Assembly: GCA_904063045.1 (NCBI GenBank)
Contig: CAJFCJ010000003.1
Location: 2,838,504-2,902,503, forward strand
From: Dimorphilus gyrociliatus
Lineage: Eukaryota > Animalia > Annelida
DNA: 64,000 nt
Direction of reading: 5' to 3'
The first letter of the stretch is position 1. Each line of letters begins with the position of its first letter. The notes under the pieces were generated by a model. It searched no databases. It was not told where the DNA came from and saw only the letters and a program-made list of their open reading frames with translations. A program made the translations under genes and the position numbers. Positions 1-49,000 of this stretch are shown in pieces.

Positions 1-15
1 CTACAATTGGGTCTC

Positions 16-85
16 TCCCTCCCCCTTCCCCCTTTTCTCTTTCTCACTCTCTCACTCTCTCTGTCTCTCTATCTCTCCGCCCCTC
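16..85. repeat. CT-rich low-complexity tract (within the sHSP intron)
   Basis: ctctct/ctcactct runs. Confidence 0.8.
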
Positions 86-16660: not shown

Positions 16661-19600
16661 ATGATATACTTGATTTTAAGTGTTTTGTGTGGGATAACAA
16701 TAAGTTTTTCTGGATTTTCTCCTGAAAAATGCGGACTTAGTTATTGTTTTAATGGAGGAATTTGTATACGTCAGGTTTGTTTCAATTCTTCTTTTATACT
16801 CGATTGTGCTCTGGCCTCTCGCCTGTTGGCTAAACTAGAGTACGTTTATATTTTTATGTAAACTGTATTGCAAAACTGCTGTTAAATCTACTAATTAATG
16901 ATATAAAATGAATAAAGTATTTAAATAACATATACTACTTATTTTGAATCCTTAATATCTTCTTTAATCTTATAGAATAACGAAAGTATTTGTCAATGTC
17001 CTCCGTCATCCAAAGGGAGATATTGTGAATTTCCCTTCGAGGAAATTCAAGAATGTGAGGCTGGCTGGAATCTTTTTGAGGATATTGGATTTGAAAGTTG
17101 CATAAGCTATAATTCATACCCGTTAACATTCTTTCAAGCAGTGACAGAATGCAAAAATCAAGGAGGATGGCTACTAGGAATAGATAAAAATGAAATATAT
17201 CTTGAAAACTTAAATCAAAGATTATCGTCAATACCTTATATAGAAAGTAAAACTTTTTGGATAAACTTTGAGCTGTCAAATAAATACATCTATAGAAAGA
17301 CAACATTCCCAACGTATTATGGGACTATTGGCGATAAATTTAACAATACCTTTGTACTTTCCTCATTTGATTTAAATAATATTTGTCCATATATCAGTGG
17401 CAAATTTATCACTGGAAAATATGAATCAAACCAATATTACACAGATAATTGCTATAATAAAAAACAGTACATCTGCCAAAAACCTTTAAAAATTGAATTA
17501 AAAGTTGATGTGAGTTCAAGACTATGTCAATATAATTGGACCTATTCACCAGATCTCAATAGATGCTTTTTACCTTTCGAAGTTAATTATAGTTATTCAA
17601 ATGGAGCTAGTTTGTGTTCACGTATGGGTGGCCACATTCCCATTTCCAATTCTGTTTACAACAGTAAGATCCTACATCGAGTGATACTTATTAAACAGAC
17701 TTCTGTTGGTTGTGGTCTAAATAGTCCTTGTAGAAATGGAGGAATATGCGAAATTAAAAACTATCGCAGACTTTGCAAATGTCCTTTAGGATTTTATGGG
17801 AAGTACTGCGAATTACTTCTTGAATACGATTCATGCTCTTCTAATCCATGTGGTAGTAACGGAGAATGTATAAGGCTTATAAAGGGTATTTCTCCAATCT
17901 ATATTTGTAAATGTGCAAGCGGCATATTCGGAGGCCCTTGTCCTAAACGTGCATGCCTAAATACATCTTTATGCAAACCAAATGGCATTTGCTTAGAACT
18001 TCCAGGAGGTACCTATCAATGTCAATGTCATGAAGGATACGGAGGAGTTGATTGCAGCATCACTTTCGGTACTGGTTTACCTCCTTTAAGCGAAGTATAC
18101 GGTAGTCTCCCTTCAAAATACTCTACAAAAAGTCCAATGGTTCCGCAGAAATCTTCTTTAACTTGTCCCGTATGCAGAACAACAAAACTTTGCAATTCAT
18201 CAATCAGATACGCGAATAATTGCGTAAGTATACAACAGTTTATAAAGGATATATAACTACTTTATTCCCTTGAATATAGGTTTCTTGTGTTAGCGAAATA
18301 AGTCTTAATGGATCAAAAGCTATCATAAATAAACTTAAATGCAGTCGGGAGAAATGTGAATATTATATTAATTGCATAGATTCGAAATGCGAAACAATTA
18401 AGATGTGTTGTTCGAGTCGAAGTTGTAATTTAATGATGAAATGTTCACCTAATACGTATAGTGGATTCTGTCGGAAACATTGCCATTGTAAAACATCTTG
18501 CGGTGATTTAACCGGTGAATGTGAAACGCCAGAATGTAAAAAGGATTTTTACGGACGCTCTTGTGACATATTACATAGAGAAATAAAATTTTGGCTATAT
18601 ACACCTCAACAAATGTCTAAAACGACAGAGAGATCTTATTCAACACCATGGATTAAAGATACAGAGAAACAATTAAAACTATGCTATAATTCAGACTTTA
18701 GAGGGAAGTGGGAACAGACTGAATGTCACAAGAAACTCTCAGTCGTTTGCGAAAAAAAACCCAACTATAGTTAGTTTACTTTTAATATTTAACTTGAATG
18801 TTTCCGTTTGATATAAAGTGTTTAATGCATTGAATTTTTTTGTAGATATTAATCCGGAAATTCAGATTAAAAGATACAGGAAACCGACAACAAGTGATTT
18901 TGGAATTGAATGCTCTTTTGAAGATTTATCACTAAAGGCTTCAGTCTTCTGGAAGAAAGATAATCAACTTTATCGATTTAGAAACAATGCGGATAGAATC
19001 GATGTTGAGGACATTATTACTCAATCAAAAAATTACGTAAGTTAACAATTTAAAAGGATATTAAAGTTGATACAGTATTAATAATTTATTCTATTTTCAC
19101 ATACGTAAAACATAAAAATACAGGATTCCCATTTTCGTTATTCTTCGCTAGAAGGATTTTACGTATGCATTGTAAACTATCAATATTTCGAAATATATTC
19201 AAGACCAATTCGGATCGAATTTGAAGACATCAAAATAACTTCAATCTTAAAGATAGAAAGAATTTTGGATCAATTCGAAGCTTTTAGCTTAGGAGAAAGA
19301 ATTACAGAAAAATTAAAATACCTCTTAAAGAATAATGAATATTTTCCATTTATAGATCAATCATTTAACATTAATATCGATCTAAAGAAATTTAGAGTTG
19401 ACCAATCAACAATAATCGAAAATGAGATTTACGTCAACTTTTTCGATGATGAATTTAATAAAAATTTAACATTTATTAAAGAAACATTAAAGTATGGATT
19501 TAATAAATTTATTGACAATATTTATTCATTTAATTTATTGGAAAATACTGATAAAGTTACGTTAATGAGATTGGCTGAAAGTGATGAATGTCAAGAAATC

Positions 19601-21802: not shown

Positions 21803-22122
21803 CATCTTTCACTATTTTCTTCCATGCACCGTACATTGTATTTTTTTTTTGTTTTTTTTTTGTACTTTTATGAACTTTATGAAGAAGAATTGAATAGTTT
21901 CTTCTTTTCATTATTTTTCAGCTATAAGAATTTTACTTGAACAGAAAATTAAAGACAATTAAGGAAAAATAACTAGAGGATAGAAATCATTATAAACTTA
22001 TTTTTTATAATCAGTTTCTTGTTGGTTTTTTATCTTTTCACTTTTAATTTTAGTCATTATTTTCTTCCTATGAGAGATTTTTTCTTTTCACTGTTAAAAA
22101 AACTATGAAATGAAGATATAAC

Positions 22123-22255
22123 AAAGAAGGAAAAAAGAGAAAGAAGAAAAGTAACAAGAGATGAAGAAGCATAAGACGGAGAAGAAGTAGAAGAAGAAGG
22201 AGAAGAAGAAGAAGACAAGAAGGAGACGAGGAAAACAAAGAAAAGACGTAGAGAA
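22123..22255. repeat. (GAA)n-rich purine tract between adhesion GPCR 1 and 2
   Basis: Imperfect gaagaagaag repeats. Confidence 0.8.
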
Positions 22256-22644: not shown

Positions 22645-25600
22645 ATGATTCTAACAAGATATCTGTACATATTTCTATTATTTTTAAGAGTTTATACTTC
22701 TGCTAAAAAGTTATCAACTTTAAAAGATTCATGTGACGATCGTAGTTGCTTGAATGGAGGCACATGCGTTATGACTAAGGTATGTAAGAAAAAAATATAA
22801 AAGATAGACAGCTTTTCTCAATATAAATAAATTAACAATAGACTAAGGAGAGAATATGTCAGTGTCCCCCGACATTTACTGGGAAATCTTGTGAAATTTT
22901 TGAGCAGACTTTCCCAACCTGTGAAACTTTTCAATATCCCATAACAAACTCAAACACAGGAAAGAAATACTGTCTTCTATTAGATCCAAGTATTGCTCTT
23001 GTAATTACTATATTATTCTATGATATCCAAAATGATTCATTTACAGATAATTGGATATTTGGTAATACCTTTGAAGATGCTAAAAGACGTTGTGAAAAGA
23101 CAGGCGGTTGGATGTTCAGTTTGAAAAATTATTTATCTTTCTCAAAAGATGTATCGACCATATTCGAAAATAAAGTAGCTATACCTTCAAACTTCGAGAT
23201 TTGGAACGGATTTGAAAAGATACAATCCTCGATATATTCTCTCTCTGAATATCCAATTTATTATGGAAAGATCAGTGACAACGATCAAACTCTAGCAAAT
23301 TACGATAATGTTAAAATTTGCTCAACATTAAATTCTCTTAGTAGTTCATTCACTCTTGCAGCAGGCTATTGTAAGGAAACTCTATCGTTTGTTTGTGAAA
23401 AGCCTCAAATGACAATAGATGACTTAGACTTGCATATAAATGTGACATTTTGTCCAAAGGGATGGTACTATTCTCACTGGTATAGAAAATGTTTTATGTA
23501 TTCACTCCAAACAGTTACTTTTAACGAGGCAGAGAGAAAATGTCATGAACAAGCATCAAATTTGACTCGTCCAACATCGAAAATATACAATCTGCTTCTT
23601 TATCATATATCGTTGATAGAAGAAACTAAGCGTAAATGCGCAACTATCAATAGTCAGTGCAAGTATGGTATAAGATGCAAATTTACATCAGAAAAAAATA
23701 TTTCCAAGTGTGAATGCTCTGCGAATCCTATATGTCTTGCCTCTAAGCCCAAGTTAGATAGACAGTTCTGTGGACCAACGGATAAGAATTGCACGGCCAA
23801 TGGTTGTCAAGACGGATGGTATGGCGAAAAATGCGATATTTTTTATGAGCCATCTAACATTTGGATTGGGATAAAAGCTAATGACGAAAGTTTGGATGCC
23901 GGTGGATTAACAAATCCTGAATCGTTCACAATTGAAACAAAGGGGCAAGGTCCTTGCTTAAGTACAAGTAGTAGCGGTACGTGGAAGGGAAATAGTTGCT
24001 CTGAAAATTTGACTTACATCTGTGAAATGGAACCGAAATATGGTAAATTGCTAAATTTCATTAATTGATGTCATAAACGTTCTTTTTCTATATTTCCAAA
24101 TACAAAGATCTAAAAGTAAAAATTAAGAAATCTTATATGAAAAGGAGAGATGACATGGGTCTTGAATGTGAAGTTCCCTTTGAAGGAAAGGAATTTCTTA
24201 AAGGGGTATACTGGAAGACTTTGCATGGCTATCATAGATTCGAACCGGATGAAACTAGAGTATCGATAAATCAAATGATTACAGAGATGACAGAAAGAAA
24301 TGAGGTAAATAATTTAAATTTTGTAATATATACAAACTTTGAATAATTATCTATGTTTCTTTTCTAATATTTGAATATTAAAGTTGGATATTGTCGATGA
24401 ACTTATTGTTGAAGGCCAATACACCTGCATAGCAAACTATGGACCATTCTCCATTCAGTCAGAACCAGTATCAGTTAGCTTCACATATTTAAATCTTGAA
24501 TTATATTTAAAGTTACCAAAGTTAGTTTTAAACAAGTTATCCCAACAACTAAGCAAGATTATTACGGCCAACCTGAATCGCTATTTCCAAAATACATCGT
24601 TATTTCAACTGGCATCGGATGTATTGACCATAGCAAAGCTAGAGGACACTTTCAATGGTAGTGTTATAATCTATAATACATTAAAAGTTTTCCAAAAATC
24701 AAGATCTTATATACTTACTGATGAATTTATATTATCGCAACTACGAAATCGTTTGAATGAAATGATTGATACAAACTCTCTTTTTAATAATGCGAATCAA
24801 ATTACTCCTGTCGAAATTCTAAGTTTTTCTTTTAAAGGCGAATGCGAAGAAGTCATTACTGAACATCCTGAAGGATTTAAAGTAAAATTCAATAGGGTAA
24901 AAGTAAATCATCAGTCTACAACAACACGCTTATGTTTAGATGGCAAACCAATAGGTACATGTAATTGTACGAAAGAAAACTATAAATATTCGTGTAAAGA
25001 GAATTTGGATTTCAGGAGAAAACAAGACTGTTATCCTACTTCAACAAATAATTCTGTTGAAACTGATACGTTACTGAAACTATCATTGATGAAAATAAGT
25101 AAAAGTAATATAGATGAATTACTTAATAAGTCAAAGGATATAGTTCAAAGGATTGACTTGAATAAACAAGATTACATATATACTTCTTTAATATTAGAAA
25201 ATATTGCACTTTCTCTAATTAAATTAAATCCTAAGCAGATTGTAAAGATCACGGAAATTGCTAACGAAGTGTTAAAAACTCCATTCAGAATAATTGATGA
25301 AGCTCAAAAGACGGCAAATTCAAGCTCAATAATGACTAATTCTATTGGATCTTTAGCGGAAAATGCTGAAATAGATAAACAGCAACTTAAAATTGTCACA
25401 CCTAGAATTTTAATGTTGATAGCTGATACTCAGAATAGTTCGTTCAATGTATTTTTTCATAATGGCTCATCAGCAGATAATCTTTTTCATAATGATTCAA
25501 TATCAATTGACAAAACAGATAAATCCTCATTTTTGAATAATTCTATCAGTGGAGTTTATTTCGATAGTGACCTATTTTCCAATTTAAGTCGTAGATTTTT

Positions 25601-27299
25601 TATGGCAATTTATGCTTCGTCAAAGTTTTTTCAAAATAATGATACGGTTTATCCCATTGGAAATGTTATAAAAGCGTCTCTTGCCAATGTAAAGATAATA
25701 AATCTTGATCCTCCAATAACAACAGTTTTCAAACCATACAGTAAATATGAAACTCCTAAAGAGGATCAATTGAAATGTGTATTTTGGGATAAGATAATTA
25801 GCGATTGGTCAACTGAAGGTTGTTTCTTCGAAACGATTAACAACGGAAGAATATTCTGTCAATGTAATCATTTTACACACTTCGCTGTGTTAACTAACAC
25901 CTATAAACATATAGATAGCCCCGTTTTCTTATCAATAATTACAAAAGTCGGATTGATTTTATCATCATGTGGACTTTTTTTCATTGTACTATCATTCGTA
26001 ATGTTCAAGTAAGTTTATTATATCATTTATCTTTATTTCTTTTAATTTATAAACAATTTTCAGTTTGAAATCTAAAACCCTACCAGAAATCTTTCGTTTT
26101 AATTTATCAATATCGTTAATAATCGTTAATCTATTATTCTTATTTGGTATAAATAAGACAGAGGACAATAATGTTTGTATAGCTATAACAGCCCTGCTGT
26201 ATTATTTCCTACTTGTCTCATTTGCTTGGATGCTTGCTGAGGGGATTTTAGCATTTATCCGCTTTGTTAAGGTATTTGAAAAGAAGTCAAGAAATTGGGC
26301 ATTGAAAGTTATATTTTGTTGCTGGTGTAAGTTAAAAATCTATCATCTTTTGTATTAATAAACATTGAAAATTTGTTTCTCTCTTTCAGTTATTCCTTCA
26401 ATTCCAATAATTTGCATTGGTGCTATAGATAAAGATACATTTAGAGGATACAAAGAAATGTAAGTATAATATATACAGTATTAAAATTATACAATTAACA
26501 TATAAAGAAAAAAGCGTCTATTTTTATTATTATTATTATTAGCTGTTGGTTGAATGGAAATTTATTATATTTCGGATTTTTATTACCAATTGGATTAATT
26601 TTACTCATAAATTGTGTTTTTTTCGTATTATCATTTCGAACTCTCTGTAAAAGACCGCAACAAGCTAATCAACAGAAGAAATTTTCAAAAGTATTCTTCT
26701 TGTTAAGATCATTTTTGTTCTTTACATTTTTAATGGGTTTAACTTGGATATTCGGATTTCTTGGACACAAAGACGCTAAGATGGCATTTCAAGTACTTTT
26801 TTGTTTAATGAATACATTTCAGGGTTTTTTTCTATTTTTATTATATGTATACATGGAAAAATCAGTTATGGATGGTTGGAGGAAATTAGCCTCCTCCTTG
26901 ATACCTCAAAAATTAAGAAAGGAAACATCAAGTGCAATTTCCAAAAGGAATATTATCAGAGAGAATACTTTGCCATCAGTTTCTAATGAGAATGAGATTT
27001 CAATGCACAACAATAAACATCAGACATCGAAAAGAGATAATAATTCTGATTCTTCACAGACTATAACGACTACTAAATGTTCAGAACCTATTGATGAGGA
27101 GGAAGGATATGAAGATTTAATTTTTGATAAATCTAGTCCACACAATAATCAAACCTATTATCCATTGCCTCGAAAAAGAAACAAAACTACAGATAAAGAT
27201 CAAGGCCCAACTGAAAATATATATTACGTGTATCCTGATATTCATGCAGATCAAAACGTTACTTACAAAGATGGACCAATTTATGATAATATTACATAA
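22645..27299 (+). CDS. Adhesion GPCR paralog 2 (shortest CTL insert, long Tyr-rich tail)
   Basis: ATG 22645, MILTRYLYIFLLFLRVYTS..CLNGGTCVMTK then gtatgt donor; CTL; split CTL; Ig; SEA with GSVII; GPS CQCNHFTHFAVLT at about 25860; WMLAEG; stop 27297-27299. Confidence 0.9.
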
Positions 27300-28152
27300 T
27301 ATACAGTATAACGATTATATTAGAATAGAATCATATATGCTATACATATATTTAAAATAGATACAATGCATTGATATCAGCTAGTACTTTAATTTCTTTT
27401 TAATCCTATAAGACATCTGTCTACCAATATCAATGCAATCTGATGAAGTATCCTTAAAAATATTTTAATAGCCTTGTTAAGTATTTCTTTCCATATGTGT
27501 GTAAATTACTCAGACTTCAAGGCATATACTTTGAGTAGTAATACAATTTGAGTACATGATCTTTCTTATAAAAACTTTATTTTATTTTAATAAACCTTTA
27601 GAGTAATGATAGATTTGTTATAGGCCCATTCAAAATATGTGGGATTAAACGAGTGTAAGACAAAGAAACGGAGAGAGATGGTGAGTTGGTTTATTAAGAT
27701 ATTTTACTTCCAATAACAGTGGTCATTATGCGCAACTGATATATCTATAACCAGAGCTACGGATAAAACTGATATTACAATAACAAACTAGTTGCATTTT
27801 TAGGTAATTAATTAGATAAATTGCATGGCCAACATCTATAAATAAGATATACGTCGACCGAAAACACAGCTAACATTTAGATAAGTCACATTTCTTTAAC
27901 TAGCATCGAACCGAAGAGGCTAAAAGCAAATTAGAGAATAACTGATACAAATATAAAATTCAGAAATTCTGTGAATGATGCTTATAGGTAATAATTAAGA
28001 ATATAATCATCTTAATATGATAATAAGCTTGTTAGAAAAATAATCGCTGTTGTTAATAACTATACTGAATTGATAGTTGATGGAGTGTATGAAACATTTT
28101 CGTTATTTCTGAATCGAATGTAGTATAGAAAACTATCAGTTTTTCATTAAAT

Positions 28153-31100
28153 ATGGATAATACATTTGCTATTCTTATACTATTAATTAATATTTATAGT
28201 ACCATTCCTGTAGACTGGAATAATGATAGATTACATTATTTTACATGCCTTGATAATTCTACATATTCAATAAAAAATAACGTAAGTTAACTTATATACA
28301 GTATTTGTTGTTTGAATTGAATGATTAATTTTTAACTTAATTATTTCATTCTTATTTAGAGTTCTAGTTTTGAATGCAAATGTCTTACTGCATCGCAAAA
28401 TGATTGTCAAGATTCTTTATTTAGATACAGTTGCGAAAAGCCATGGACTATGCCATCCTGGAAGAAAAAAGATTCTTATTGTTATAGAATAATTCCTTTT
28501 ATTGAATATTATTCTGGAGTACAAATGTGCTTAGATAGCGGAGGATGGCCATTGTTGAGCAGTTTAAATACTATTTCAATCTTTTTCAGACAATCTTTCA
28601 ATGTACCAAAAGATTTTTGGATTGTTCCTAAAGATTCTTATCAAATATCATCACGGATTGCTACTAATTTTAACCAAAACATCAGTCAATTGAGATTTTC
28701 TGTCGTACGTAGAAATGAAAGTCACGAGTGTAGCTTTATCAATCTCAAACAGTCTAGAAACCAACCGTTTTCGAATAAGGACGAGAGTAGGGCCCCTTGT
28801 TTTAAGAAAAAAAATTTAATCTGTAAAACTTATGGACTTGACAGCCATGTTTATTCAAATATTAACTTTTGCCCAGAAAAATGGATTTATTCACCGTACT
28901 TTAATGAATGTCTAAAATACTTTTCGCAGCCAAAAATACTTAAATCAGCTGAAAAGACCTGCAAAATAGCAAAAGCCCAGCTAGCTAAGTATCAGTCTCG
29001 GTCGCATTATGAAACTTTAAGATCAGCATTTCTTTTGAATGGGAATTTAAGAAGTTGCGATAGTTTAGGTAATTGCGATGATAAACGGTCTTATAAAGGA
29101 ATAAAGTGTGCTTGTAATAATTCAATGAACGATTCTGATTGCTCAAATTTTCTTCATAAAGGAGATTGTTTATTAAAAGAATGCCTTAGCACTTGGTATA
29201 GATGTTCTTCATCCCTCTGCGAAGGATCAAAAATATGTATAGATAATCAAATAGACCAAAGATCATCTATTATTTGCATTGACCAAGTTTTAACCTCAAA
29301 TTCTAAACCAATCGATCAGCCATGTTTAAGAAAACCCTGTAAACAAAATGAACTATGTTATTCTTTAAGCAAAGATAACTATAAGTGTATTACTATAAGC
29401 CATCAACAAACGGAGAGACTAGAATGTCATGTTTGTAGATCTACAATTGGTTTAGACGATTGCCTCTTATATGCTTCTACAAGTCAAAATTGCGTAAGTT
29501 TATAATTAATTGAAAGAAAAATAATTTAATTATCTCAATAATTAATAAAAAATTTTTTACATAGGCTTCTTGTAGAACAATAGTTAAAATGGAAAATTAT
29601 CAATTTAAATCGATTATGTTAAAGTGTAGTAATGAAAGATGTAAAAAATTTGTCGTATGTAAAAATCGTAGATGTACAAGAAAAGAATTTTGTTGCCGTA
29701 CAAAACATTGTATTAAACCAGATTATTGCAGTAAATATAGTTATGATCCACCTGGCTGCAAAAGAAAATGTAAATGTGCATGTGATTCGTACAGTGGCGC
29801 CTGTTTAAATTCTTGCCCAAAAGCATTTATAAGTACTATTTCAAAACCTGATACTATTGTTCCAAAACAATTAATGTATAGCGAAGTGAAAGGTAAAATT
29901 GAATACTTTTGTTAAAAAGCTGTTTATTATATTTGTACTTTTCAATTTTTACTAGATAGTAATGGTAGATGGTCATATCTTCAAAATATGAGCCTACCTT
30001 ATTTTTGCTCAAAATTACCATCATACGGTAGGAAAACTTATACATTTTATTGAAAAGAAAAATATCGTTATTAAACGGCAATCTTTCGTAGAAAGATCTA
30101 ACGTTTACGTTAAACGAATTGGAATAATGGGGCCTAATAATTTTGGCTATGAATGCCGATATCCAAAGGAGTATGGAGCATTTGTAAAAGAAATTATTTG
30201 GACAAGAAATAATAAAGTATTGAACTTAGAAAGAAATGTCGTTAGGCCATTAGTGGAAGATATATTGAAAGAAATATCTAACAAGAAGGTAATAAGTCTT
30301 GTATTAATAATTGATACAATCGATGCTATCTTTGCCTTGTAGAAATCTATATTTCTATTGGAAGGGAAATATCAATGTTTCATTGTTTTACCAAATGCAA
30401 AACTATCTTCAAAACCAGTGAAAGTAAGATTAAGGGTTGATAAGATGCATTTAATAATTGATATGGAAATAGTTAATAGCAGTATAGAGAAAAAATTGAC
30501 TGAAATTATTCAAAATACGGTTACTACTTTTGGGAAATATGAACCGTCCTTTGTAGAACTATTAAAAATATCCAAATTGAACTCGAAAAGTAATAGATAT
30601 TCTTACATGATTAATATCTCTCGTAGAAGGAAAAAGTTCAGCAGATACCCTCAGCAGAATGAGCAACTGTATCCTTCTGGAGAATATGAGTCATCTTTAA
30701 AACTTAAACTAAGACGCAGTCTTGAGGATAGAGAATATCCAGTATTAAGTTTGAGGTTATACTGGGAAAAATGTCAAAAAAAAGTAGTTTCTTCAAAAAA
30801 TTATGGAGCTATAACTTTTATAGGAGTAAAATATGGTAGAGTATCACGTTCAAAAGAGAGATGCTTTAATGGTAAACATATTGGAAAGGTAAAATGTTTA
30901 TTAATAAATAATACTGTAACCAAATGGGATGATAATATTATTTGGAGACCAGTAGAAGATTGTAACCCAAAAACAGATTCCTTAAACAGTAATATTGACT
31001 TAAAGAATATGTCAATAGACTTGTCAGAAAATGTAAACATAGTATTTGAGGAATTGAAAAACATAACAAAATCAAGGACTCTAAAATCGATAGATATTTA

Positions 31101-32798
31101 TTATATAAATAATATAATAAGTAATGCACAGAAAGAGGAAACATTACAAGACGAAAGCACATTTGAAAATTTATTACAAACGACAAAAAATCTATTACAC
31201 ATTGATGAAAATACAATAACTAAGACGAAAAATACGTCATTTAGTTTACCAATAATTATTAATAATGTTGAAGAAATAGCTAAAACGATCAAGTTAGATA
31301 AGGATAGCAAAAGATTCTTTACAAATGAAATATCAATTGATATAAAACAAAGTAAAAACTTTAACTTCAATTGCTTCGTCGTAAAAGATTTGGATGAAAA
31401 TGGAACATTAAATAATAATTCAATTGAGTTTAATTGGCTTGATAATGAAAGTCAGTTAAGTAATTCTGTTGCTGCTATACATTTTGAAAGCAGTCTCATC
31501 AGTGATGATGAAGATGAACGTCTTATTACTAAAATAATTTCTAAGGAAAATGTCTTTCAGATGAATTCCAGTATTAAACCTATTACTAAAATTATTAGTG
31601 CCTCCTTTACATCAGAGCGAATGATAGACATTTATCCTCCTATTACACTTGTATTTTTACCCGATAATAACCTTACAATTAAAAACTTATCAAAGATTAA
31701 ATGTGTGTATTGGGAAGATAATCTACATGATTGGTCAATGGATGGATGTTATTTTGATAGAATGGAAAATAACAGAATATTTTGCAAATGTAATCATTTT
31801 ACCAATTTTGCTGTATTACTAGATATTGAAAGGGATGATAATGAAGATTTTGAAGCCTTTTCAATTGTTACAACAGTTGGTCTATGGATTTCTATTGTTG
31901 GTTTATCCTTAATTATTATATGTTTTCTCATATTTACGTAATTATTATTATTATATTTACTATTTAAATTTACATATTTACTAATGAACTCTTTTATTTA
32001 ATACTTGAAGAAAAGATTGGAAAAGGGTTGAACAAGGCCAAATAGCTTTAACTAATTTAGCTCTCGCCTTAATTATTGTGGATACAACCTTCTTACTCGG
32101 TATAGACAAGACAGAAAATATTACAAAATGCTATATAGTATCGGCAATACTGTACTATTCTCTTTTAGTTGCATTTGGATGGATGCTAGTTGAAGGAGTA
32201 TTATCTTATATTAACTTTATTCAAGTGTTTGATACTCATATCTCACATTTCGTTAAAATAACAGTAATCTGCTGTTGGTGTAAGTAATTTATGTCCACAA
32301 TTAACAAAATAGCAACTAACTTTAATATTAATACTGCCACAGCTTTACCCGTAGTTCCGGTTATCGTTGTATCGATCGTAAATAAGGATCTATTAATCGG
32401 ATACGAAAAAATGTATTACATAATTTTTCTATTTATGGTCATTCGCTTACTAATTTAAACATTGTTTTAGATGTTGGCTGGATAGCGGAGTATTCTACTT
32501 TGGATTTCTGATACCGATTAGTTTAATATTATTAGTCAATTTAATAATATTCATAATATCATTTCTTAATATATATAAAAGTGATCATGGAAGACTCATA
32601 AAGCAACAATCAAGGGAAAGGGCATTAAAAAGGCTTCGTCTATTTCTTGCTATTACATTTGTTACTGGTTTAACTTGGATATTTGGAATGTTTGCCGTTA
32701 AAGATGCCAAATATACCTTCCAATTAGTATTTTGCCTACTCAATAGCTTTCAAGGTGGTATTCTCTTCCTTTTTTTTATATCAAGAAGAACAAGATGA
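28153..32798 (+). CDS. Adhesion GPCR paralog 3 (degenerate ectodomain, essentially no cytoplasmic tail)
   Basis: ATG 28153, MDNTFAILILLINIYST; exon 2 from 28360; LU-like domain; mini-exon 29956-30027; GPS CKCNHFTNFAVLL at about 31790; WMLVEG. The last exon, 32471-32798 (not in the ORF track), reads CWLDSGVFYFGFLIPI...FCLLNSFQGGILFLFFISRRTR*. Confidence 0.85.
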
Positions 32799-33749: not shown

Positions 33750-36700
33750 ATGTCTAATTTAATGATATTATTCTTACTACTGACTCTAAATTATTGTTTT
33801 ACTCTTGACTGTTTACAAAACAAATGTAAAAATGGAGGATTATGTGTTCAAATAGAGGTGAGTGAATATTTGTTCACTTAGATAGTATTATTACTTTACC
33901 CTATTGGAAAACAATGATATAAACATATTCTTCTCTTTTTATCCACTGAACGTTTATTATCATAATTCTACTTCAACTTTTATTTAGTATACATATACCT
34001 CAAACAAACTCTCTATAAAATTTTTGCCTATTAAGGACATTATATTTATTGACCTGTACTATTTTCATTAAAATTTATGCTGTGTATGTAATTTAATCTC
34101 TTCTCTATGAATATATTCAAACAAATAAAAAGAGGAAAGAGAGAGAATATCATTATCTTTAGTAATACGATTATGAAATTTCTTAAAAACTCTCTATCCT
34201 ACATTTACAGTATTTCTTTATATTATGTCAATACTAGACTTTTTTCTGACTTTTTCCCATTAGGCATATTGAAAATGCATATTATATAATATTATAAAGC
34301 AGGTTAAGAAAACTGACATTATTTCTAGATAAGAGAAAGCTATTTTTTGTCAATGTATTTCAGGGAAAAACTATATGCCAGTGTCCACCTCCATTCTATG
34401 GGGCTATATGTCAATATAGGAGTTCTCGAGGCATTTTTTGCGATGAAGGATGGAAACTCAGTACTACACAAACGTGTTTAAAATATTTTGAAAAGCGATT
34501 AAGTTTTAAAGACGCTTCGTCGAGTTGTATTGACTCGGGTGGATGGCTTATGGGATTGGCGTCGAGTTTCAAAGAACCTAATACATATTTGAATACACAT
34601 ACAAAATTACTGACAGCTTTTACTGATGTTTCAATATTTTTATCGGATACTAGAATTTGGTTGGGTATGGAAAATCATGACGAAATTATATACTCAAAGT
34701 ATGAATATCCTAAATTCTATGGAAAGTCTGGTGAAGACGATTTTAATGGATATTATATTAAGTCTTTTGATTCCATAAAAACATGTAGCTATTTGGAAGT
34801 AAACAAATTTGGACAAAGGCCTTCTTTAAATAGCATATATGACGTTGGAAGTTGCAGCCATTTAAAGAGTTACATATGTGAAAAATCACTTTCAGAATTT
34901 ACCATCCTTGAAAAAACAAAATTCTGTCCTGAAGGATGGTACTATTCACAAGATTTTAACGCATGTTTAAAGTATATACCAACACCTCTCCCATTTCAGA
35001 ATGCATCTAATGCTTGTAAACTTGAAGATAGTCATATTTCTTGGCCAAAATCACTTAAATTTAATATTATGCTGACTGAAATCAGTGTTCTAACAGAAAC
35101 GGAACTAGGATGTGGACTATACAGCCCTTGTAAGAATGGAGGGAGTTGTTTTTTAACAAAAGATGGATTTAGTAATTGCCTCTGTCCTATCGATTATACT
35201 GGAAAATTTTGTGAGAATTCTCTTGTGAAAAACGTTTGCGCTTCAAATCCATGTGGTGATGGTGGAATTTGTATTCCATTGCCAACAGGATTTAGCCTGC
35301 CGTATGTGTGTATTTGTCGAAGCGGAATAGCCATGTCTGAATGTTCAAATGATATTTGCTCTTTGATTAGTCCATGTGGTCAATATGGATCATGTGTAAC
35401 GGATCCATCAAAAACTTTGGGCTTCAAATGCTATTGCACTAGCAATTATGAAGGTGAATACTGTGAAATCTCGAAAGTAATCAAGGATTGTCCTAACTAT
35501 TCATGTGGATCATATAAACAGTGCAAACTAATTCCGTCACAAGGCCTTGACATCACGTGTGTTTGTCCTGCTGGACGTTATGGAGATAAATGTGAATTAG
35601 CTATTCCTACAGATCATCCATGTAAAACTAATCCATGCAAGAATAATGGACTTTGCGTTCCAATAACTCCTTACAAAAAAGATTACTATTGCGCGTGCCA
35701 AAGTAAATTTTTGGGAGACAAATGCGAACAAAGAGAGGTGCAGATTCCAGGTTCTTCACTAGTTTGTAATGAGGAAACAACAACACAATGCCCTGTTTGC
35801 AGTGTTAGTGGAAATCTACAGGAATGTATGAACAAAGTTGATTTGGCAAGTGGATGTGTAAGTAACACGTTTTAAAATGGTATGCACTTAGTTCAAATAA
35901 ATTTTCTTTTTTAATTATTAGAAATCATGTTCAATAATCCACATGAAAGATGACAAGACTGGTATGGAAAGAACAAGCATTAGATGCAATCAGAAAAGCT
36001 GTAAACAGCAATATACCTGTTTAACTTCACAACCCAAATGTGATACTCAAGAAATATGTTGGGGACCAATAGAGTGCCAACCACCGAATGTCTGTACAAC
36101 TGAAAATCAGCATGGAAAGGGCTGTAATTATGTGTGCAGATGTGAAGGTCCTTGCGAAGATTCAACAGGTACATGTCTTACTGGAAAATGTAAAGTTGAT
36201 TGGTATGGCACCAAATGCGATATCAAATACACACCTATCGAAATTTTAATTGGAGTTAGATTGCTTCAAAATGAAATGGTATTTACAAATGGTGCAAAAA
36301 TCGATAAAAGCATCTTAAATGATATGATAATAGACAAAAAAAATGGTAATTGTTTTAAAACTACAATTAATGGTGATTGGAAAAGCATACAATGTAATGA
36401 AAAGCATACTTTTGTTTGTCAAAAAAAGCCAAACTATGGTAAGTTTTGTACGATATAAACTATTTAAAGTTTATATATTAGCATTTATTAATAATTTATA
36501 GATAACTTTGAACAACTTGAAATTAAAAGAACAAGCATTTCAACAATTAAAGATTTAGGAATTGAATGTGTTATACCCAAAGATATTTCCAAATTATCTA
36601 AATCTGTTTATTGGAGGAAGGATAATGGATATTTTTCATTTACGAATCCTAAAAATAGAATTAATACTACTATACTATTAGATAATCTAAAAGTACTGAA

Positions 36701-39469
36701 TGGGGTAAATAGCTTTGAATTTTTTTAAATATATTCATTCTAAGAAAATAAATCGTTCTTTTACAGGATCCATTAATTTCATATTCATCTTTAGAAGGAT
36801 CTTACAGCTGTGTAATAAATTTACCAATGAAACAGTTGACGTCAAAACCAATACAAATTACTCTAAACGAGATCAGAGTTGGCTCAATAGTAAAGTTCCA
36901 TACTTCACCATCAATCTCATATGCTTCAGATCTAGGTGTTACCTTTACTCTTGAACTTAGAAATTTAATAAGTACTTTCCTATTAAGTTTTATTAAGGAT
37001 TCTGTAACAATTGAGGTTGATCTGAAAGAAGTTAGATCTGGGAGTGTAATAGTTGAAAATACTATATATATTCAACAGAATATGGCTTTGTATAAATATA
37101 ATTTAGATTATATTTTGGATACTTTAGAAGATTTCTTAAAAGCGAAAGTAGAAGATAAGGAATTTTTTACATTATTTCAGAATTATCAATATGTTAAGGC
37201 TATTGAATTTATGTCTCTATTTACAAAAAATGTATGCAGAAAGAGTAGAATTAAACATAACAAGTATGGCTATGAAGTTGAATTTAAAACAGCAAAAGTT
37301 GGCGAGAAGTCTTATACTTTGAGGAAATGCTTAAATGGAAAACCCTTAGCTGTTTCTGATTGTGAATTGTCGAATTATGGTTATCCAAAAAGGGTAAATT
37401 TTGTATGGACTCCTGAAGACGAATGTTATCCTTCAAAGACTTACAGAGAATCAACTGAAATGTTGAAAAACATCTCACGGAAGCTAATTACTGAGGATAA
37501 TGTTGAAAATATCACACAAGAGACGGAAATAATAGCTAGAAATAATGAATTGAAATCATTAGATATATCTTATATTTCAATGATAATTGAAAATATCAAA
37601 GCATCAAGGATAAAACCTCCAATGAAGGCAACATCAAATATAATAAAAATCTCCAATGAAATCCTTAAAGTTTCTGAAAATGAGATAATGGATTCTAATG
37701 ATATAACGCAGTCGAGTACAGTTCTTGTTCAATCTTTAGAAACAATTGCAGACAGAACAGTAATGCCTGATAAGCGTAAAGGCGTACGAATGTTTACTCC
37801 AAGAATTTCAATAGATATTTGGGAAGGTAGTAACGCACCTTTCAATAGTTACGTTGTTAAAAGAATGAAAGGTGATGGTCTACTAAGTAATGATTCAATT
37901 GTTGCCGAATGGAATAATCACTCTATCTCGTTGAGTGATTCTGTTGCAAGTATTTTCTTTGAAGAAAGTCTTAAACTTGAAGGGAAATTTCGAGTTGTTA
38001 CAACTGTTTATTCAAATAAGAAGTTCTTCTTAAAAAAGAATATGTCCGTAGAGCCAGCTGGAAAGATTATCAGTGCTTCAATTTCAAATTTTAGAGTACA
38101 CGATATTGATCCTCCAATATGCTCCGTTTTTCTACCAGATGACATCGATTTATCAACAGTAACTATGAACAGTCACCCTAGATGTGTCTACTGGAATTTC
38201 GAGAGAGACGAATGGTTATCAGATGGATGTAGCTATAATAGAACATATAATGGAAGAGTCTTTTGCCAATGTGATCATTTCACCAATTTTGCGGTACTAC
38301 TAGATGTAGAAAGAACTGGCGATCCCGGACACGAAGCTCTCTCATATATCTCAATCATTGGTTTATCGCTTTCTACAGCTGGATTGGCTTTTATTATCGT
38401 CTCTTTCTTTGTTATTAGGTACGTTATATTGAAAAAGCTGTATACACTTATAATAGATATATTCCTTTTTCATAGATACTTAAGAACACGGACAAAAAGA
38501 AGAAATTCTCAAATTGCCTTATTTAATTTGGCGTTAGCACTTATAGCTGTTAACATAGTGTTTTTAGTTGGAATAAGAAAAACTGAAAACCGTAATGGCT
38601 GTATTGCAGTTTCAGCTCTTTTATACTACTTCTTATTATCATCCTTCTTTTGGATGTTAGCTGAAGGAGTTATAACTTATATTAACTTTGTTAAAGTATT
38701 TGATAATTACATTTCTAATTTTATGCTTAAATCATTAGTATGCTGTTGGGGTAAGATAAAAATTAAATATGATCGTTTATAAGTAATGATTGAAAAATAT
38801 CTTTGTTTTATCAATAGGTATACCAGCCGTACCAATTATCGTCTTATCAATTGTTGATAGAAATCTGTTTCTTGGTTTTGATGATTTGTAAGGACCTTAT
38901 ATTTTTGATTATTTTACTTATACTTTTTGTTTTCATTCTCTCTTTTTTTTAATAGCTGTTGGCTTGACACAACACCTTTCTTCTATGGATTTCTCCTACC
39001 CATTGCCATAATTATAATGATTAACCTTATCATTCTAATTATGACTTTTTCATCGTTCTGTAAAAGACCTGGAAATCTAAGGAGTACTCAAACTAAAGCA
39101 CAGCGTCATTTCCTACATTTAAGAGCTTTTATCTTCTTCGTATTTGTTATGGGAACAACTTGGATATTTGGCTTTCTTGCGATCAGAGACGCTAAATTTG
39201 CTTTTCAATTAATATTTTGCATATTAAATGCTTTTCAAGGATTTTTCCTATTTTTGCTATTTATAACAAGGGAAAAAAGAGTAAGAGATGGCTGGAAAAA
39301 GTTATGTGGTTGTATAAATAGTAAAGAAACAACAACAACAACGAATTCCAGCAATGAGAAGAAAACGAAAAAAATCTCAGTGGAAACTTCACCGACTGCT
39401 GATAAAAATTTCTTTGATTTATCGAAAAGTTCAGAGGAAAACACAACTTCGAACTCGAATGATGCTTGA
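33750..39469 (+). CDS. Adhesion GPCR paralog 4 (longest CTL insert, about 5 EGF plus LU-like)
   Basis: ATG 33750, MSNLMILFLLLTLNYCFT..CKNGGLCVQIE then gtgagt donor; exon 2 from 34364 (GKTICQCPPP); SEA with GSVIV; GPS CQCDHFTNFAVLL at about 38270; WMLAEG; stop 39467-39469. Confidence 0.9.
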
Positions 39470-42400: not shown

Positions 42401-43002
42401 GGCTTTATTTTGGAAAGGCTAACAGATCAGTCGCAAAAGTACAAGTGAATATACACAAAAGAAATTTATAGAAGACAATAGCATAAGAATATCTATTTAT
42501 CCCTTTTGTATGCATACGTACATATTTATGATATATGACTTGTATTTAATGACCTAAGTACCTTTGTATATACATATTATGAATAAATTCTATTTTATTA
42601 AAATATGAATTCTATTTAAATTATTCGGTTGTTAGGTAAATAGCCTGTTATTTTTAGCTCTTGTATATATGTACCAACAATCAAAGGTAAAAATCTACAT
42701 TGATTATCTATTGTTACAATATAATGCAATATTACACAAGGAAAAGGCCAGATTTTAAAGGCAGGTAATCTTTAGTAAGAGAATATTGACACAAAAACCA
42801 ATACATGCGCCTCTTTTACCATAAGAAAATTCGTTGTAGGATCTTATAATTATTAACATAACAATAAATATTCCGTCAGGGAAGTAAATTCTTTGGTCTA
42901 GTATTTTGAAATATTTTTCTCATTTGAAAAAAGGCTTTATTCAATATAGACGTTCTCCTTCTTTCTCTCTCTTATGATATTTGTTATATTCTAAAACAAA
43001 CT

Positions 43003-46000
43003 ATGTTTAATATTCTTCTCTGTATATTGTTTTCCCTACCTTGGACTCTATCATCAGAAAAATGCTCAAAGGATAGTTGCTACGACGGTCAGGCCTGTCT
43101 TGTTAATCCTTTAGTGAGTTTTAAAATATATGTGCTATTTTTATTATGTTAGCTCTTATATACATTTTAGTCTGGAAAAGTATTTTGCCAATGTTCTCCC
43201 TTTCAAAAAGAAAATTGTATAGAACCTACAATACAGGAACCGTTATGTGATATCGGCTGGACGCATCATAAAGTCGAAAATGCAACAGAATCTAATAATT
43301 ACAAATTAAACGAAACGCTTGAAACATGTGTAAAAATCTTTAATATTTCAACTTCGTACCAAAATGCTTCGTTACAATGTCAAAGAGAGGGAGGATGGCT
43401 ATTAGGAGTTAACGATTCAGCTCTTTTCACTACTTTAGATATATTTACCGAAGGTTATAAAGAGTTATGGGCTGGAATAATTATATTAACGTATCAAAAT
43501 GAAAGTAGAATATATACTCATTCTTCTTTTCCAAAGAAATTCAAAGACAACTATATAACACTTCCTTCAGACTACAACAAGACTACGGATTGTCCTTATT
43601 TTAGATTTGATAATCAGCCAACGATTCTCTTTGATGATTGCGAAAGCTCTTCAAAAATTTTCGCTTGTGAAAAAAGAAAATATTACAATAGCGACTTAAC
43701 GACAGAGTTAAATATTTGTCCCACGGGATGGTTTTATTCATTTGTCAATAATAAATGTATAAAGTATATGAGAGATGAAGTTGAATTTGAACAAGCTAAA
43801 CAAGCATGTACTAATTTTAAAGCTCATCTCGCCTGGCCTATCTCTGCAATAGGGAACTTTGCGCTTCTTAATGCGACGATAATAGCTCTAAACTCTATCG
43901 GATGTGGAGTGAATGCTCAATGTCGAAACGAAGGAAAATGCTCATTCAACGATTCCATAGATAATCCAGGGTGTATTTGCGCAAGTGGCTTCTCAGGACA
44001 ACAATGCCAAAACTATACAGTAGGAACTGGTATTCCACCAACCTATGCTTCTTGCCCTATCGGAACTTATTCTTTAAATACATGCCCATACAAGTGCCAC
44101 TGCTTCAATGATCAACCTTGTGATAATACTAATGGATACTGCCCTAATTTTAAATGCAAGGATAATTTTTATGGTTTAACTTGCGATGCTTCTTTTAAAG
44201 TACCAAACGCATGGATTGGCGTTACGAGTACAAACAACGAAGGATTCGTCTACACAAATGGTATTTCATTAAATATGGATACAATAGGCTTTACTGCCGA
44301 TAAAAGTTCCACGCAAATAAAACAGTGTCACACAATCTCAGAAGATTGGTATTTAAGTCCGTTTAAAATTTGGAAGAAATATAATTGTACCGAGAGAAAG
44401 ACATACCTTTGCGAAAAAGATTCCCAACTAGGTATATATTTATATATATATATATACATGTATATATAAATTTATATATACAGTATAAAACAACTAATCT
44501 CTTATCATAGATACTTAAAAACAAGATATTAATGTAAAATGTTGTTTATAGATACTCTCTCTATTCAAATTCAATTAAAAAGGACTGATGTAAAAAGTTC
44601 TAATAGCTTGGGAATTGGTTGTAGAATTACAAAAGCAATAGATAAATTGGCTTATAGGGATATTTATTGGGAAGTAGATGGATCTTATCATAAATTTGCC
44701 ATGCTGAAATACAATGATCTCTACGTAATCGATGTAAGTTCCTCTTTTTATAATCATTCTTTCTAAAACGTTTTTATAAGAAAATAGTAATAATTTCATT
44801 TGAATTTCGTTTCTTTTTCAGACATCTCATGAATATTTTATAAATGAAATAGGTACCAACAAGGGACGATATAGATGCATGGTTGATTTACCATACATTA
44901 ACTTAAAATCTAACGCTTTAAGTGTCAACCAAAAATCAACTTCAATTATTCTTGCTTTAATCTATAATAGTGTTACGAAACCTACGTCAAATGTAATTAC
45001 TATTACTAATATTACCTTTGAAAATGCGATTCAAGATATAAGGGATTTATCTGGAGTTTCTTTAAATTCTGAAATTATAAATGAATTTTATCTTGTGGAT
45101 ACAGGACTTTATGCAGCTTATATGAAATTCATTTATGACAATAGTACTGGTGATGTTAGTTTGCAAAGAGCCTTCTATTTAACCCGCAAAATTATACAAA
45201 AATCGATGAAAAACTATACTTTGTTGCTTGAAAACCTCAGTGTTAGTTTAAGCGATACCAAAGTTTATCCAATGAATATGTGTCCACCAATCTTTGAGAG
45301 TGCTGATAATAGAACTACTATACACTTCCCTTCAGCCTCTTTCGGAGATACCATATTTTCAGAGGAAAATTGTCTTTCTGGAAAACCCAGAGCGTCTCGC
45401 TCGTGCACTGCGTCGCCAACATTGAAGTGGAAAGGTGACTGGGAAAAGGACATTCGTTGGAATTGTGAACCAGAGATATCAAAAACAAATATCTGCCCAA
45501 TTCAAAAAAAATCGTGTCGTCCAGGAAATTTGTGTATAGAGGTAGGCTTATTGCTATATATTTTACAAATTCTAAAAACTCGAGTTTGTAGGATTGGTCA
45601 GGATATACTTGCCAATGTTCAGAAATTGATAATAAATGTGATGTAAATCATATTTATCAAGCTTGTCCGCCACAAGGTCGTCCTCATGAATTCTGGGAAC
45701 TTTCAGGTTATCACAGCGGATATTATTGTTTAAATCTTGAACAAGAATCTAATTTTTCCGTCGCTGAAGAAATATGCCAAAAATCTTTTTCATGGATTAT
45801 ATCAGTGGCTGGTGATCATAATGACCAAGCGAAACTACTAAGCGACAAATTGTTTGATCTTGGTGTTGGTAAGAACATGTGGATTAGTATGAAAAGAAGG
45901 AATGGCAAACTTCGTACAAGATTTTCTACTGTATTAGACGTACCAGATATATTTAAAAATATCACTATACCAAATTTTGATAATCAACTGACTTGCCTAT

Positions 46001-49000
46001 TTGTTGATGGAAATGTGGCTCTTAATGACCCAGACGGACGCTATCAAATATATTCAAATAATTGTTCAGAGAAACTGACAACCGTATGCGAAAGAAGAGC
46101 GACGTTTAATTATGAACTACTATCAGATAGTCCTCTTTGTTCAAAAGGATGGTTCTTTTCATTTTATTATCACAAGTGTAGAAAATTTTTCTCTGAACCA
46201 AAAAGCTTTAAAACTGCAAATGATACATGCTACAAACACGGTGCAATACTCAACACATTTTCAACTTCTGATGCCACAGGAAGAAGGGAAGCATCTAATC
46301 TTACTCTACTGGAAATGAACATGAAAGGATGTGGTTTAAATAACCAATGTTTAAATAGGGGAAAGTGCTTATTTAAGAACGAAAAGTTTGTTGGATGCGA
46401 TTGCTTACTCAATACAACAGGATCGTATTGTGAAAAATCTACTGAAAAACTGTGGGAGCTAAATAGCTGTCCAACAGGGAGATATTCCACGCCGTATTGT
46501 GATAAGATTTGTAATTGCAAAAATAATGCTTCATGCGATGTTGAAACTGGGAAGTGTCCAAGTTTCTTATGCGATGACGGATTTTATGGACCAACTTGCA
46601 GCTCTTACTTCAAATTGCCAAATCTTTGGTGGAAAGGAAATTCAATGGATTGCTGCATTATTGGACATGATGGCGAAAAATGTGGTAGTTGCGATTTATT
46701 GTATCCTTTTGTTTGCGAAAAAGATCCAGAGAGTGAAGGTAAATTAATTTAAATATTAATCCATAAAATATTATCTATCATTATAATTGTTTCAGATAAA
46801 TTTGACCTTCCAGTTGTTGAACAAGTTAAAGATCCAACTGTCTTCGATCCTGGACTTGTTTGTAAAATTCCTGACTATTATTCTCAAGTTCTCAGTAAAA
46901 CTATATATTGGATTAGAAATGATCAGCATCTCTATTATCGAGGAGAAGGGAATTTGAGACTTATGAATGAAAAAAAATATTCAACGCTGAATATAGTAAG
47001 TGAAACAGTTTTATTTTAAGTTATCAATTATACTGTATAAGTATATTATATTAATTAAATATTAGTCAGATGATAATACTAGAAAAATAGTTGGAAGAAT
47101 AGAAGGAAACTATACGTGTATCATTAAATTTCCAACATTTGAAATAGCCTCAAATCCTCTACAATTGACTTTTACAAACAAAAAGTATGTTATTCGATTA
47201 TCCATACCAGATTATAATTTAAAGAATCAGGCTAAACGTATCACTGAAGTACAGTATCTTTTTTGGAATATCATTGCAAATGAGACAATTTTCTCAAATT
47301 CGAAATTATTATTGGAAATTGAAGAACCAATACAAGAGGCTAATAATGTAACTGTAACTTTTTATGTGCATCTAGACGCTCAATCTCGAATTAGAAGAAG
47401 TACTTCTTCCAACCAACTTCCGCAATATATTATGGGCTTATCAGAGAAATTCAAAAATGCTATTATGGCTCAAGGAGATATCAAGACATTCTCTTTGGCT
47501 ACGGATACTCTTAAAGCAGTTGTGGTAGAATTCTGTGAAGAATCTTTCCTTTACCACCCGATAAGTTGGGAAATTGTATCATTTCCTAAAACAGAAACTG
47601 GAAACACTGCCGATAGTGTTCAGAAGTGTTCAAAAGGAGGCTCAATAGGGACACGAGTTTGTTCTGGTACTACATGGCAAGATCCTATATGGCAAGACGA
47701 TACACTTTGTTTTGATTACTGCTCGGAATTAAATTCTACATACCCATCAAATCCTTCAATTTCTGTTACATTTCCAAGAACACTTGAGAAGAATTCTACA
47801 AACAGCGTAGAAAAATGCGAAAAGGGTTTATTCTTTGGCGCTGCGGATTGTCTAAACGGAGCGTTTCAATCTTTTCAGTGGACGTCGGAAAAGGATTGCT
47901 TTTTTTATTGTCCAACCAGCGTAATTAAAAATCCTATTACTGGAATAGACGTTACTTTTCCCGAAACGAAAAGCAATACAAATGTTTCTAGCAATGAAAA
48001 GTGTAAAACGAACATTCCACAAGGAACAAGTTATTGTTCAAAGGGCACCTTTAGCACACCGACATGGCTAAAGGAGGCGGATTGTTTTATATATTGTAAC
48101 GAAGAAAGTGTTAAAAATCCTAAAACTTCCTTGAATACTACTTTTCCAAAAATTAGAAGCGGTGCAACTGTCAATAGTTTGGAGAATTGTACTGACGGTG
48201 TGCCTGAAGCGTCTCGTTATTGCTCGGATGATGGTTGGGAAGAGGTTATTTGGACAGAAGCAGAAGATTGTACGGTACTAACTACTATGTTAAAGAATCT
48301 CTCGAAAACAGCGATTACCGAAGATAATATCGATACTGTTACACAGCAGACGGTAGATCTTACCTTAACCTCAAATCTGACATCAAATCATATTACATTG
48401 GTTAGTACAATTGTTGAAAATGTCAAAGAAAGTGATATTGAAACAACAAAAGAAATTTTTGAGAATATAGTAACTATTGTTAGTAATGTATTAGCTTCAC
48501 CTTTAAAATCGATTGTTCAATCTCAAAGCAAATCAAATTCAAGTACAAATTTTGTTGAAGCTATAGATTACTTCTCCGAAAAAGCTATACTACCTGAAAA
48601 TCAAACTTTCTTAAATGTAGAAACATCACAAATTGCCCTGACTATTTTGAACGGGAAGAATATAGATTTTAATACGTTTTCTTTCGAAAATATTAATAGA
48701 TATGATAAAAACATCAAAAATATAACCTTGAATACTTCTCTTACTACAGTTCCTACAGACTTGGAACTAATTAATTATGGTATATACTTTGCAGACGTTT
48801 TCAAAATTTATCCTAATAAGAGAGTTATAGCTGCAATTTATGCCAATGCAAAATTCTTTGAAAGAAGCGAAGAAACTATTACGGAAAGTAAAGTAATAAG
48901 CGCATCTATTGGCAATCAAACAGTTGTAAATCTTAAAAATAACATTACTTTAATATTTCAACCAAATAATGAAACAATTAAGAATGGATACGATTGCGTT

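Follow-up and report, generated by a model that had tools for sequence, protein, structure and literature searches.

Few extracellular folds have been studied as much as the C-type lectin-like domain (CTLD), which is regarded as a contiguous building block moved around whole by domain shuffling. A locus of the tiny marine annelid Dimorphilus gyrociliatus raises the question of whether such a domain can also be opened by other domains and still fold as one. The window, by which we mean the whole stretch of DNA analyzed, comprises 64,000 nt (assembly GCA_904063045.1, contig CAJFCJ010000003.1, positions 2,838,504-2,902,503 of the forward strand; all coordinates below are window positions) and holds five tandem adhesion G-protein-coupled receptor (GPCR) genes, paralogs 1-5 (p1-p5). 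Their common domain order is EGF, a contiguous first CTLD (CTL1), a split second CTLD (CTL2), an Ig-like domain, an HRM/GPR128_N-like domain, GAIN/GPS and the seven-transmembrane region (7TM). In p5, the N-terminal module (EGF, CTL1, split CTL2, Ig-like, HRM-like) is tandemly duplicated, and the two resulting modules, designated 5A and 5B, together with p1-p4 provide six copies of CTL2. The original prediction for this locus counted all six as split CTLDs hosting nested domains; we find five solid instances, and the copy in p3 is doubtful. Sequence comparison and predicted folds point to a nested-domain CTLD, in which two sequence-distant halves would form one domain with an EGF-type insert in the alpha2-beta2 loop, a reading to which we assign a probability of about 0.85.

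The split CTL2 and its junctions

In all six copies, CTL2 is interrupted after helix alpha2 by 66-348 aa of Cys-rich modules; no copy is one contiguous stretch of chain, the insert lying between alpha2 and beta2. We located the halves by stop-to-stop translation and motif mapping and scored them with a hidden Markov model (HMM) built from 11 relatives with a contiguous CTL2 only. They are listed here with these scores and, where available, with AlphaFold2 (AF2) confidence as the predicted local distance difference test (pLDDT):

17516-17710, plus strand: p1 CTL2 N-half (beta0, beta1, alpha1, alpha2; C0, C0', C1); 32.6 bits against the contiguous-relatives HMM; the N-half profile matches the N-terminal ~50 residues of solved CTLDs
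18565-18762, plus strand: p1 CTL2 C-half (beta2 FWLY, C2, C3, final VVCEK); joined halves cover HMM positions 2-104 at 48.6 bits
23442-23636, plus strand: p2 CTL2 N-half; AF2 pLDDT 91-98; HMM 36.8 bits
23835-24035, plus strand: p2 CTL2 C-half (IWIGIK ... YICEMEP); Lectin_C positions 39-107 at 25.5-31.1 bits; VIA-align Z 16.3
28861-29055, plus strand: p3 CTL2 N-half; 31.4 bits against the contiguous-relatives HMM
29805-30029, plus strand: p3 presumed CTL2 C-half, divergent, closing with the ...PSYG motif common to these exon ends; HMM score not significant, whichever way the stretch is read
34916-35110, plus strand: p4 CTL2 N-half; 37.8 bits against the contiguous-relatives HMM
36219-36431, plus strand: p4 CTL2 C-half (ILIGV ... 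FVCQKKP); joined halves cover HMM positions 1-104 at 49.9 bits
43708-43902, plus strand: 5A CTL2 N-half; AF2 pLDDT 81-94; HMM 36.8 bits
44185-44424, plus strand: 5A CTL2 C-half (AWIGVT ... YLCEKDS); Lectin_C positions 40/41-107 at up to 41.9 bits; VIA-align Z 18.1
46129-46329, plus strand: 5B CTL2 N-half; HMM 35.4 bits
46600-46728, plus strand: 5B CTL2 C-half, compact, lacking the long-loop region; joined halves cover HMM positions 2-105 at 44.7 bits

The junctions are uniform across copies. The N-half measures 65 aa in five copies and 67 aa in 5B, with the insert starting 62-67 residues into CTL2, and the last insert Cys precedes the beta2 Trp/Leu by 9 residues in 10/10 copies when orthologs are included from a deeply diverged sister species (Logan assemblies SRR23372228, SRR23372229 and SRR23372231; ~40-50% protein identity). 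Every N-half carries three Cys in the long-form CTLD pattern (C0, C0', C1). The C-halves of p1, p2, p4, 5A and 5B carry another three (C2, C3 and the final xCE) and a WIG-type beta2, which occurs as WIG, WLY, LIG or WWK. The Cys framework (C0-C0', C1-C4, C2-C3) and WIGL-type beta2 are thus present except in p3, which has no C2/C3 pattern; the Cys are read from the sequence. By the canonical CTLD bonding pattern, C1, the helix-1 Cys of the N-half, would pair with C4, the final xCE Cys of the C-half, and this bond would staple the two halves together. In p2, 5A and 5B, both halves and the insert each lie within one open exon, as the original prediction had argued against a gene-model artefact, and in p1, p3 and p4 the insert contains one conserved GTAAGT intron.

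Direct reading of the CTL2 C-halves finds neither EPN nor QPD, and the WND position reads WKG, WEQ, WKS or WKK. Since these sugar-binding motifs are lacking, CTL2 probably does not act as a calcium-dependent lectin.

Evidence bearing on whether the halves form a single domain

A profile of the GAIN/7TM exons, searched against 1.84 billion representative proteins, recovered relatives in Owenia fusiformis, bivalves, gastropods, a spider, a scorpion, a mantis shrimp and amphioxus. These ADGRG-like adhesion GPCRs, among them P0010 (Owenia fusiformis), P0022 (Mya arenaria), P0013 (Argopecten irradians), P0110 (Oratosquilla oratoria) and an amphioxus protein, share the order CTL1, CTL2, Ig-like, GAIN/GPS, 7TM with the Dimorphilus receptors. 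Their CTL2 also shows the same C-x2-GW ... C-Y-K signature but, unlike that of Dimorphilus, is contiguous and 100-133 aa long. In our alignment (A4), the relatives' contiguous CTL2 aligns with both Dimorphilus halves, and the gap in the relatives is the insert. Lectin_C aligned over its full profile in 3/10 relatives scanned (P0010, P0025 and P0110), with P0010 and P0110 above the gathering threshold. Among the best 150 relatives there were 23 end-to-end contiguous matches, and separated N-part and C-part matches (~150 aa apart) occurred only in the Dimorphilus protein. The split CTL2 hence consists of host parts homologous to a domain that is contiguous elsewhere and of an insert made up of autonomous domains (Pfam EGF and SCARF1-type EGF).

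With the insert excised in silico, the joined halves of p1, p2, p4, 5A and 5B each gave one match to the contiguous-relatives HMM, extending from position 1 or 2 to 103-105 at 44.7-51.1 bits; the same HMM gave single N-halves 32-38 bits (p3, 31) and single C-halves 8-16 bits. A match over the whole CTLD (PF00059) was therefore obtained in 5/6 copies with this HMM, and the one strong match that the original prediction expected from excision was missing only in p3. The halves can also be placed separately on solved structures: a profile of the six N-halves matches solved CTLDs at chain positions ~2-55 (aggretin beta 2-47, codakine 2-52, CLEC5A 1-52), and a C-half profile matches them at roughly residues 60-129. 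In the intact p2 and 5A sequences, the Pfam Lectin_C match exceeds the gathering score and is limited to profile positions 39-107, and isolated CTL2 N-halves have no Lectin_C match in Pfam. Homologue searches returned no match with the p2 exon, only P0002 itself with region 215-458 of P0002 (the public p5 protein), and only generic EGF proteins (fibropellin, Delta-like) with the p4 exon.

We obtained AF2 models for two copies, p2 from alignment A4 with the contiguous relatives included, and 5A from the six split sequences with no contiguous relative. The p2 model (predicted template modelling score, pTM, 0.69) reaches a pLDDT of 91-98 over residues 1-60, 87 over residues 141-150 (beta2) and 92-97 over residues 171-198, and is lower in the insert (51-67) and the long-loop region 151-170 (55-70). 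All of its Foldseek matches in the PDB are CTLDs, and VIA-align superposes it on solved CTLDs with Z up to 16.3 (111 residues at 2.3 A, model range 2..198). The 5A model (pTM 0.72; pLDDT ~78-80 in the insert EGFs and <50 in the linker) superposes on human Mincle with Z 18.1 (128/132 residues at 2.1 A, model range 2..239). Both predicted models accordingly have the CTLD fold with both halves included, which bears out the expectation that the halves pack as one domain. In both, alpha2 ends at residue 63-64, 1-2 residues before the insert, and beta2 begins ~9 residues after it, which places the insertion site in the alpha2-beta2 loop.

Several observations weigh against a joined fold or narrow its support. 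The contiguous relatives in the p2 alignment favour a joined model, the 5A alignment has a depth of only 6 sequences and yielded five models that differ among themselves (mean pLDDT 52-76), and the insert itself is modelled at low to middling confidence. The joined fold is a prediction from sequence comparison and AF2, and RNA support at the level of contigs covers p5 only. The p3 copy poses a further problem: its presumed C-half is without the C2/C3 pattern and has no HMM score as a CTLD C-half, and its reading frame, which runs on to the common ...PSYG exon end, is broken once, by an in-frame TAA at 29913-29915. Splicing of a 45-nt GT..AG stretch (29911-29955) would take out the TAA in frame, and the C-half scored neither with read-through (X at the stop) nor with this mini-intron reading. 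p3 may be a gene in decay, or one that splices an exceptionally short intron from a weak donor; of the words sampled from its CTL2 region, a fraction of 0.84 occurs in the public RNA run described below.

The look of p3, with its degenerate first insert module, unscorable C-half and in-frame TAA, is what would be expected if the EGF block had destroyed CTL2 and left the halves as decaying linker relics that do not co-fold. The N-halves unseen by Pfam in the intact proteins and the missing sugar-binding residues would fit such a loss as well. We consider this very unlikely, because five copies, and their orthologs with only 23-56% identity in these halves, retain all of the canonical Cys (six), the WIG strand and the core aromatics; the N-half length and the 9-residue C-terminal junction stay constant; joining the halves yields a single-domain score; and the two AF2 models are complete CTLDs.

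A second possibility is complementation in trans, in which N- and C-halves from different chains or modules pair up (5A with 5B, or across receptor dimers) as a 3D domain swap enabled by the insert. CTLDs form loop-swapped dimers, as in the snake-venom snaclecs; p5 moreover carries two split modules in one chain, and our AF2 runs were of monomers. We nevertheless regard such pairing as highly improbable: AF2 closes each CTLD within one chain at high confidence, p1, p2 and p4 each have only one split module, and CTL1 aligns end to end with Pfam Lectin_C in 5/6 copies, which makes it complete by itself and a partner unnecessary.

Composition, expression and origin of the insert

With the first Cys of the opening EGF and the last Cys of the closing EGF taken as endpoints, the inserts have the following positions, lengths and modules:

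17711-18564 (17711-18223 and 18280-18564; intron 18224-18279), plus strand: p1 insert, 266 aa; three EGF, linker, Cys-rich module, SCARF/MEGF-type EGF; Pfam EGF in three stretches, E 1e-11
23637-23834, plus strand: p2 insert, 66 aa; one EGF and a truncated terminal EGF; within a single open reading frame, 22842-24065; AF2 pLDDT 51-67
29056-29804 (intron 29494-29564), plus strand: p3 insert, ~226 aa; first and terminal EGF-like modules degenerate; without Pfam match
35111-36218 (35111-35857 and 35922-36218; intron 35858-35921), plus strand: p4 insert, 348 aa; six EGF, Cys-rich module, SCARF/MEGF-type EGF; Pfam EGF E 1.9e-12, EGF_STAB1-2
43903-44184, plus strand: 5A insert, 94 aa; EGF, linker, SCARF/MEGF-type EGF; RNA contig without joint; SCARF1 match
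46330-46599, plus strand: 5B insert, 90 aa; EGF and SCARF/MEGF-type EGF; RNA contig without joint; SCARF1-type match

These values reproduce the coordinates and hand-counted lengths given earlier (66, 90, 94, 266 and 348 aa; p3 ~226 aa, for which ~230 had been claimed). The spliced translations of the p1 and p4 inserts contain 38 and 50 Cys, respectively, and no stop. The first module is a classical EGF that opens with CG(L/V/I)N in most copies and is not canonical in p3. The last module is an eight-Cys EGF ending in (F/W/Y)(Y/F)G-x2-C. Its profile matches the EGF repeats of SCARF1 (8hna_B, E 8.4e-11), so SCARF/MEGF-type is a better label than the laminin-type assigned at first; the EGF at the start was called correctly, apart from p3. 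Between these two modules lie extra EGFs, two in p1 and five in p4, and in p1, p3 and p4 also a Cys-rich module of ~80 aa that is split by the conserved intron, which is in phase 0:

18158-18444, plus strand: Cys-rich module of the p1 insert
29430-29729, plus strand: Cys-rich module of the p3 insert
35790-36095, plus strand: Cys-rich module of the p4 insert

Neither Pfam nor PDB profile searches assign this module to a named family. A CC-x4-C stretch in p1 and its sister-species ortholog is only suggestive of Ly6/uPAR (LU) domains, for which there was no match in Pfam or, with a profile of the C-terminal 55 aa only, in the PDB.

RNA evidence comes from one 7178-nt contig of a public run, which covers 43171-44425 and 45590-46736 without a joint and skips four GT..AG introns (44734-44821, 45540-45589, 46737-46793 and 46996-47065). 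The joint-free coverage shows that the 5A and 5B inserts are present in the mRNA and that 5A and 5B belong to one transcript, splicing of intron 45540-45589 being what connects them in the contig. An annotation or assembly artefact, with the inserts as unspliced introns or mis-joined gene pieces, could appeal to the fragmentary public gene models (DgyrCDS2580 is only part of p3) and has next to no likelihood, as every copy of the insert reads through in frame and shows a Cys pattern, those of 5A and 5B stand in spliced RNA, which refutes the idea for these two, and inserts are conserved in the independent assemblies of the sister species.

The sister-species loci (L001 1-3711; L005 1-15130) are syntenic, with an IP3R-like gene upstream followed by p1 ... 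p4 and p5, and the orthologs of p1, p2, p4, 5A and 5B all keep the split CTL2. Between the two species, the halves are 23-56% identical and the inserts 32-60%; module numbers are equal, and Cys counts correspond (38/38, 50/48, 14/14, 14/14). As a side observation, the sister species makes a useful comparison genome for the compact annelid Dimorphilus. In our tree, each paralog pairs 1:1 with its sister-species ortholog (100/100 support), and the ten split copies form a clade apart from Owenia and the molluscs (100/100). The tree and the ortholog pairs place the insertion before the duplications and after the split from the Owenia lineage. The tree does not resolve the branching among the five paralogs and hence yields no sequence of events for the gain and loss of modules. 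By these sequence comparisons, each paralog's arm has been stable since the duplications, and the cassettes differ by gain or loss of internal modules and share the first and last. Of the idea that CTL2 is a scaffold displaying an exchangeable arm, the position in the alpha2-beta2 loop stands, and "exchangeable" overstates the case, given cassettes that share their end modules and are stable between two species. The nested CTL2 is known so far in Dimorphilus and one close relative only.

The receptor genes around these domains are arranged as follows in the AT-rich window (GC ~30%):

16598-50318, plus strand: five tandem adhesion GPCR genes, with GPS and 7tm_2 Pfam matches
to ~21800, plus strand: p1 gene
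22842-27300, plus strand: p2 gene
28360-32800, plus strand: p3 gene
34298-39466, plus strand: p4 gene
42928-50318, plus strand: p5 gene

Their assignment to the adhesion class (B2) follows from Pfam matches to GPS (E ~1e-12) and the secretin-type 7tm_2 (E 1e-11 to 1e-17). The public entry for p5, DgyrCDS2583 (2084 aa; P0002), aligns to 44810-50318 at 96-100% identity, and its precomputed Pfam list contains GPS and GAIN only. Since that list lacks Lectin_C, present annotation does not reveal the CTLDs of this receptor family. The public gene models of the region are fragments, DgyrCDS2580 spanning only the Ig-to-GPS part of p3 (30127-31938). A large p5 exon (47066-49228) encodes four tandem Cys-containing units, each weakly GPR128_N/HRM-like (one matches Pfam PF22257, E 5e-4), where each of the other paralogs has a single such unit. 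The 5A exon is followed immediately by a short simple repeat (44426-44482), which translates in the exon frame as IYLYIYIYMYI.

Relation to known receptors and proposed function

CTLDs, EGF modules, adhesion GPCRs and nested domains are all familiar; their combination as seen here is not. Like the Dimorphilus receptors, selectins, lecticans (versican, neurocan) and the group XIV proteins (thrombomodulin, CD93) combine a CTLD with EGF modules at the cell surface or in the matrix. In those proteins, the EGF modules stand before or after an uninterrupted CTLD, in series, whereas in Dimorphilus they lie inside it. The protein-atlas look-alikes of the p2 CTL2 are likewise proteins with Lectin_C and EGF. 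The EGF repeats of SCARF1 (SREC-I) and the MEGF proteins match the last insert module; SCARF1 is a single-pass receptor with a tandem EGF array, and in the Dimorphilus insert this type of EGF is present in single copy as the re-entry module. Integrins offer an analogy only. Their alpha I domain is inserted in the beta-propeller and their beta I domain within the hybrid domain, which in turn lies within the PSI domain, so that here too a host domain is built from two distant segments and an autonomous inserted domain forms a side branch of a receptor. The two systems share neither fold nor ancestry, and allosteric coupling has been shown for the integrins only.

The statement that no described receptor has this topology has held up so far in literature and fold-library searches that were not exhaustive. 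Full-text literature searches gave no description of nested, split, interrupted or inserted CTLDs, and the Dimorphilus genome paper has no mention of lectins or adhesion GPCRs. In the AlphaFold Database (AFDB) clusters and the ESM Atlas, only the CTLD part of the model was matched (TM score by query <=0.50). The few long alignments in these fold libraries had a root-mean-square deviation of 20-30 A and, judged without their sequences, appear to be tandem CTLDs or CTLD-EGF chains and not nested domains.

We propose that in an ancestor of the Dimorphilus cluster, an EGF-type block was inserted into the alpha2-beta2 loop of CTL2 of an ADGRG-like adhesion GPCR. The halves (beta0, beta1, alpha1 and alpha2 from one, beta2 to beta5 from the other) would still assemble into one CTLD core, as they do in silico. 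Because the insert leaves and re-enters this core at fixed points, it would be a side branch anchored at both ends, giving a branched ectodomain in place of a linear chain. The arm begins with a classical EGF and ends with the SCARF/MEGF-type EGF, and the paralogs differ by 0-5 more EGFs and the Cys-rich module. Most likely, CTL2 would then be a structural hub, with the EGF arm giving each paralog a protein-binding surface of its own. A bolder extension is tentative, and we put its chances a little below even: that this is the first natural CTLD hosting nested autonomous domains, that its alpha2-beta2 loop is permissive and rigidly anchored and carries paralog-specific EGF arms, and that force or a ligand signal could pass from the arm through the disulfide-stapled hub to GAIN.

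As a conserved natural CTLD tolerating 66-348 inserted residues in the alpha2-beta2 loop, the Dimorphilus CTL2 marks this loop as a site where a CTLD scaffold may accept grafts. It also provides a concrete case of domain-into-domain insertion with contiguous outgroups at hand for comparison. Standard domain annotation misses such nested-CTLD proteins, as the public p5 entry illustrates. For the biology of adhesion GPCRs, the arrangement suggests that ectodomains can be branched and not only linear.

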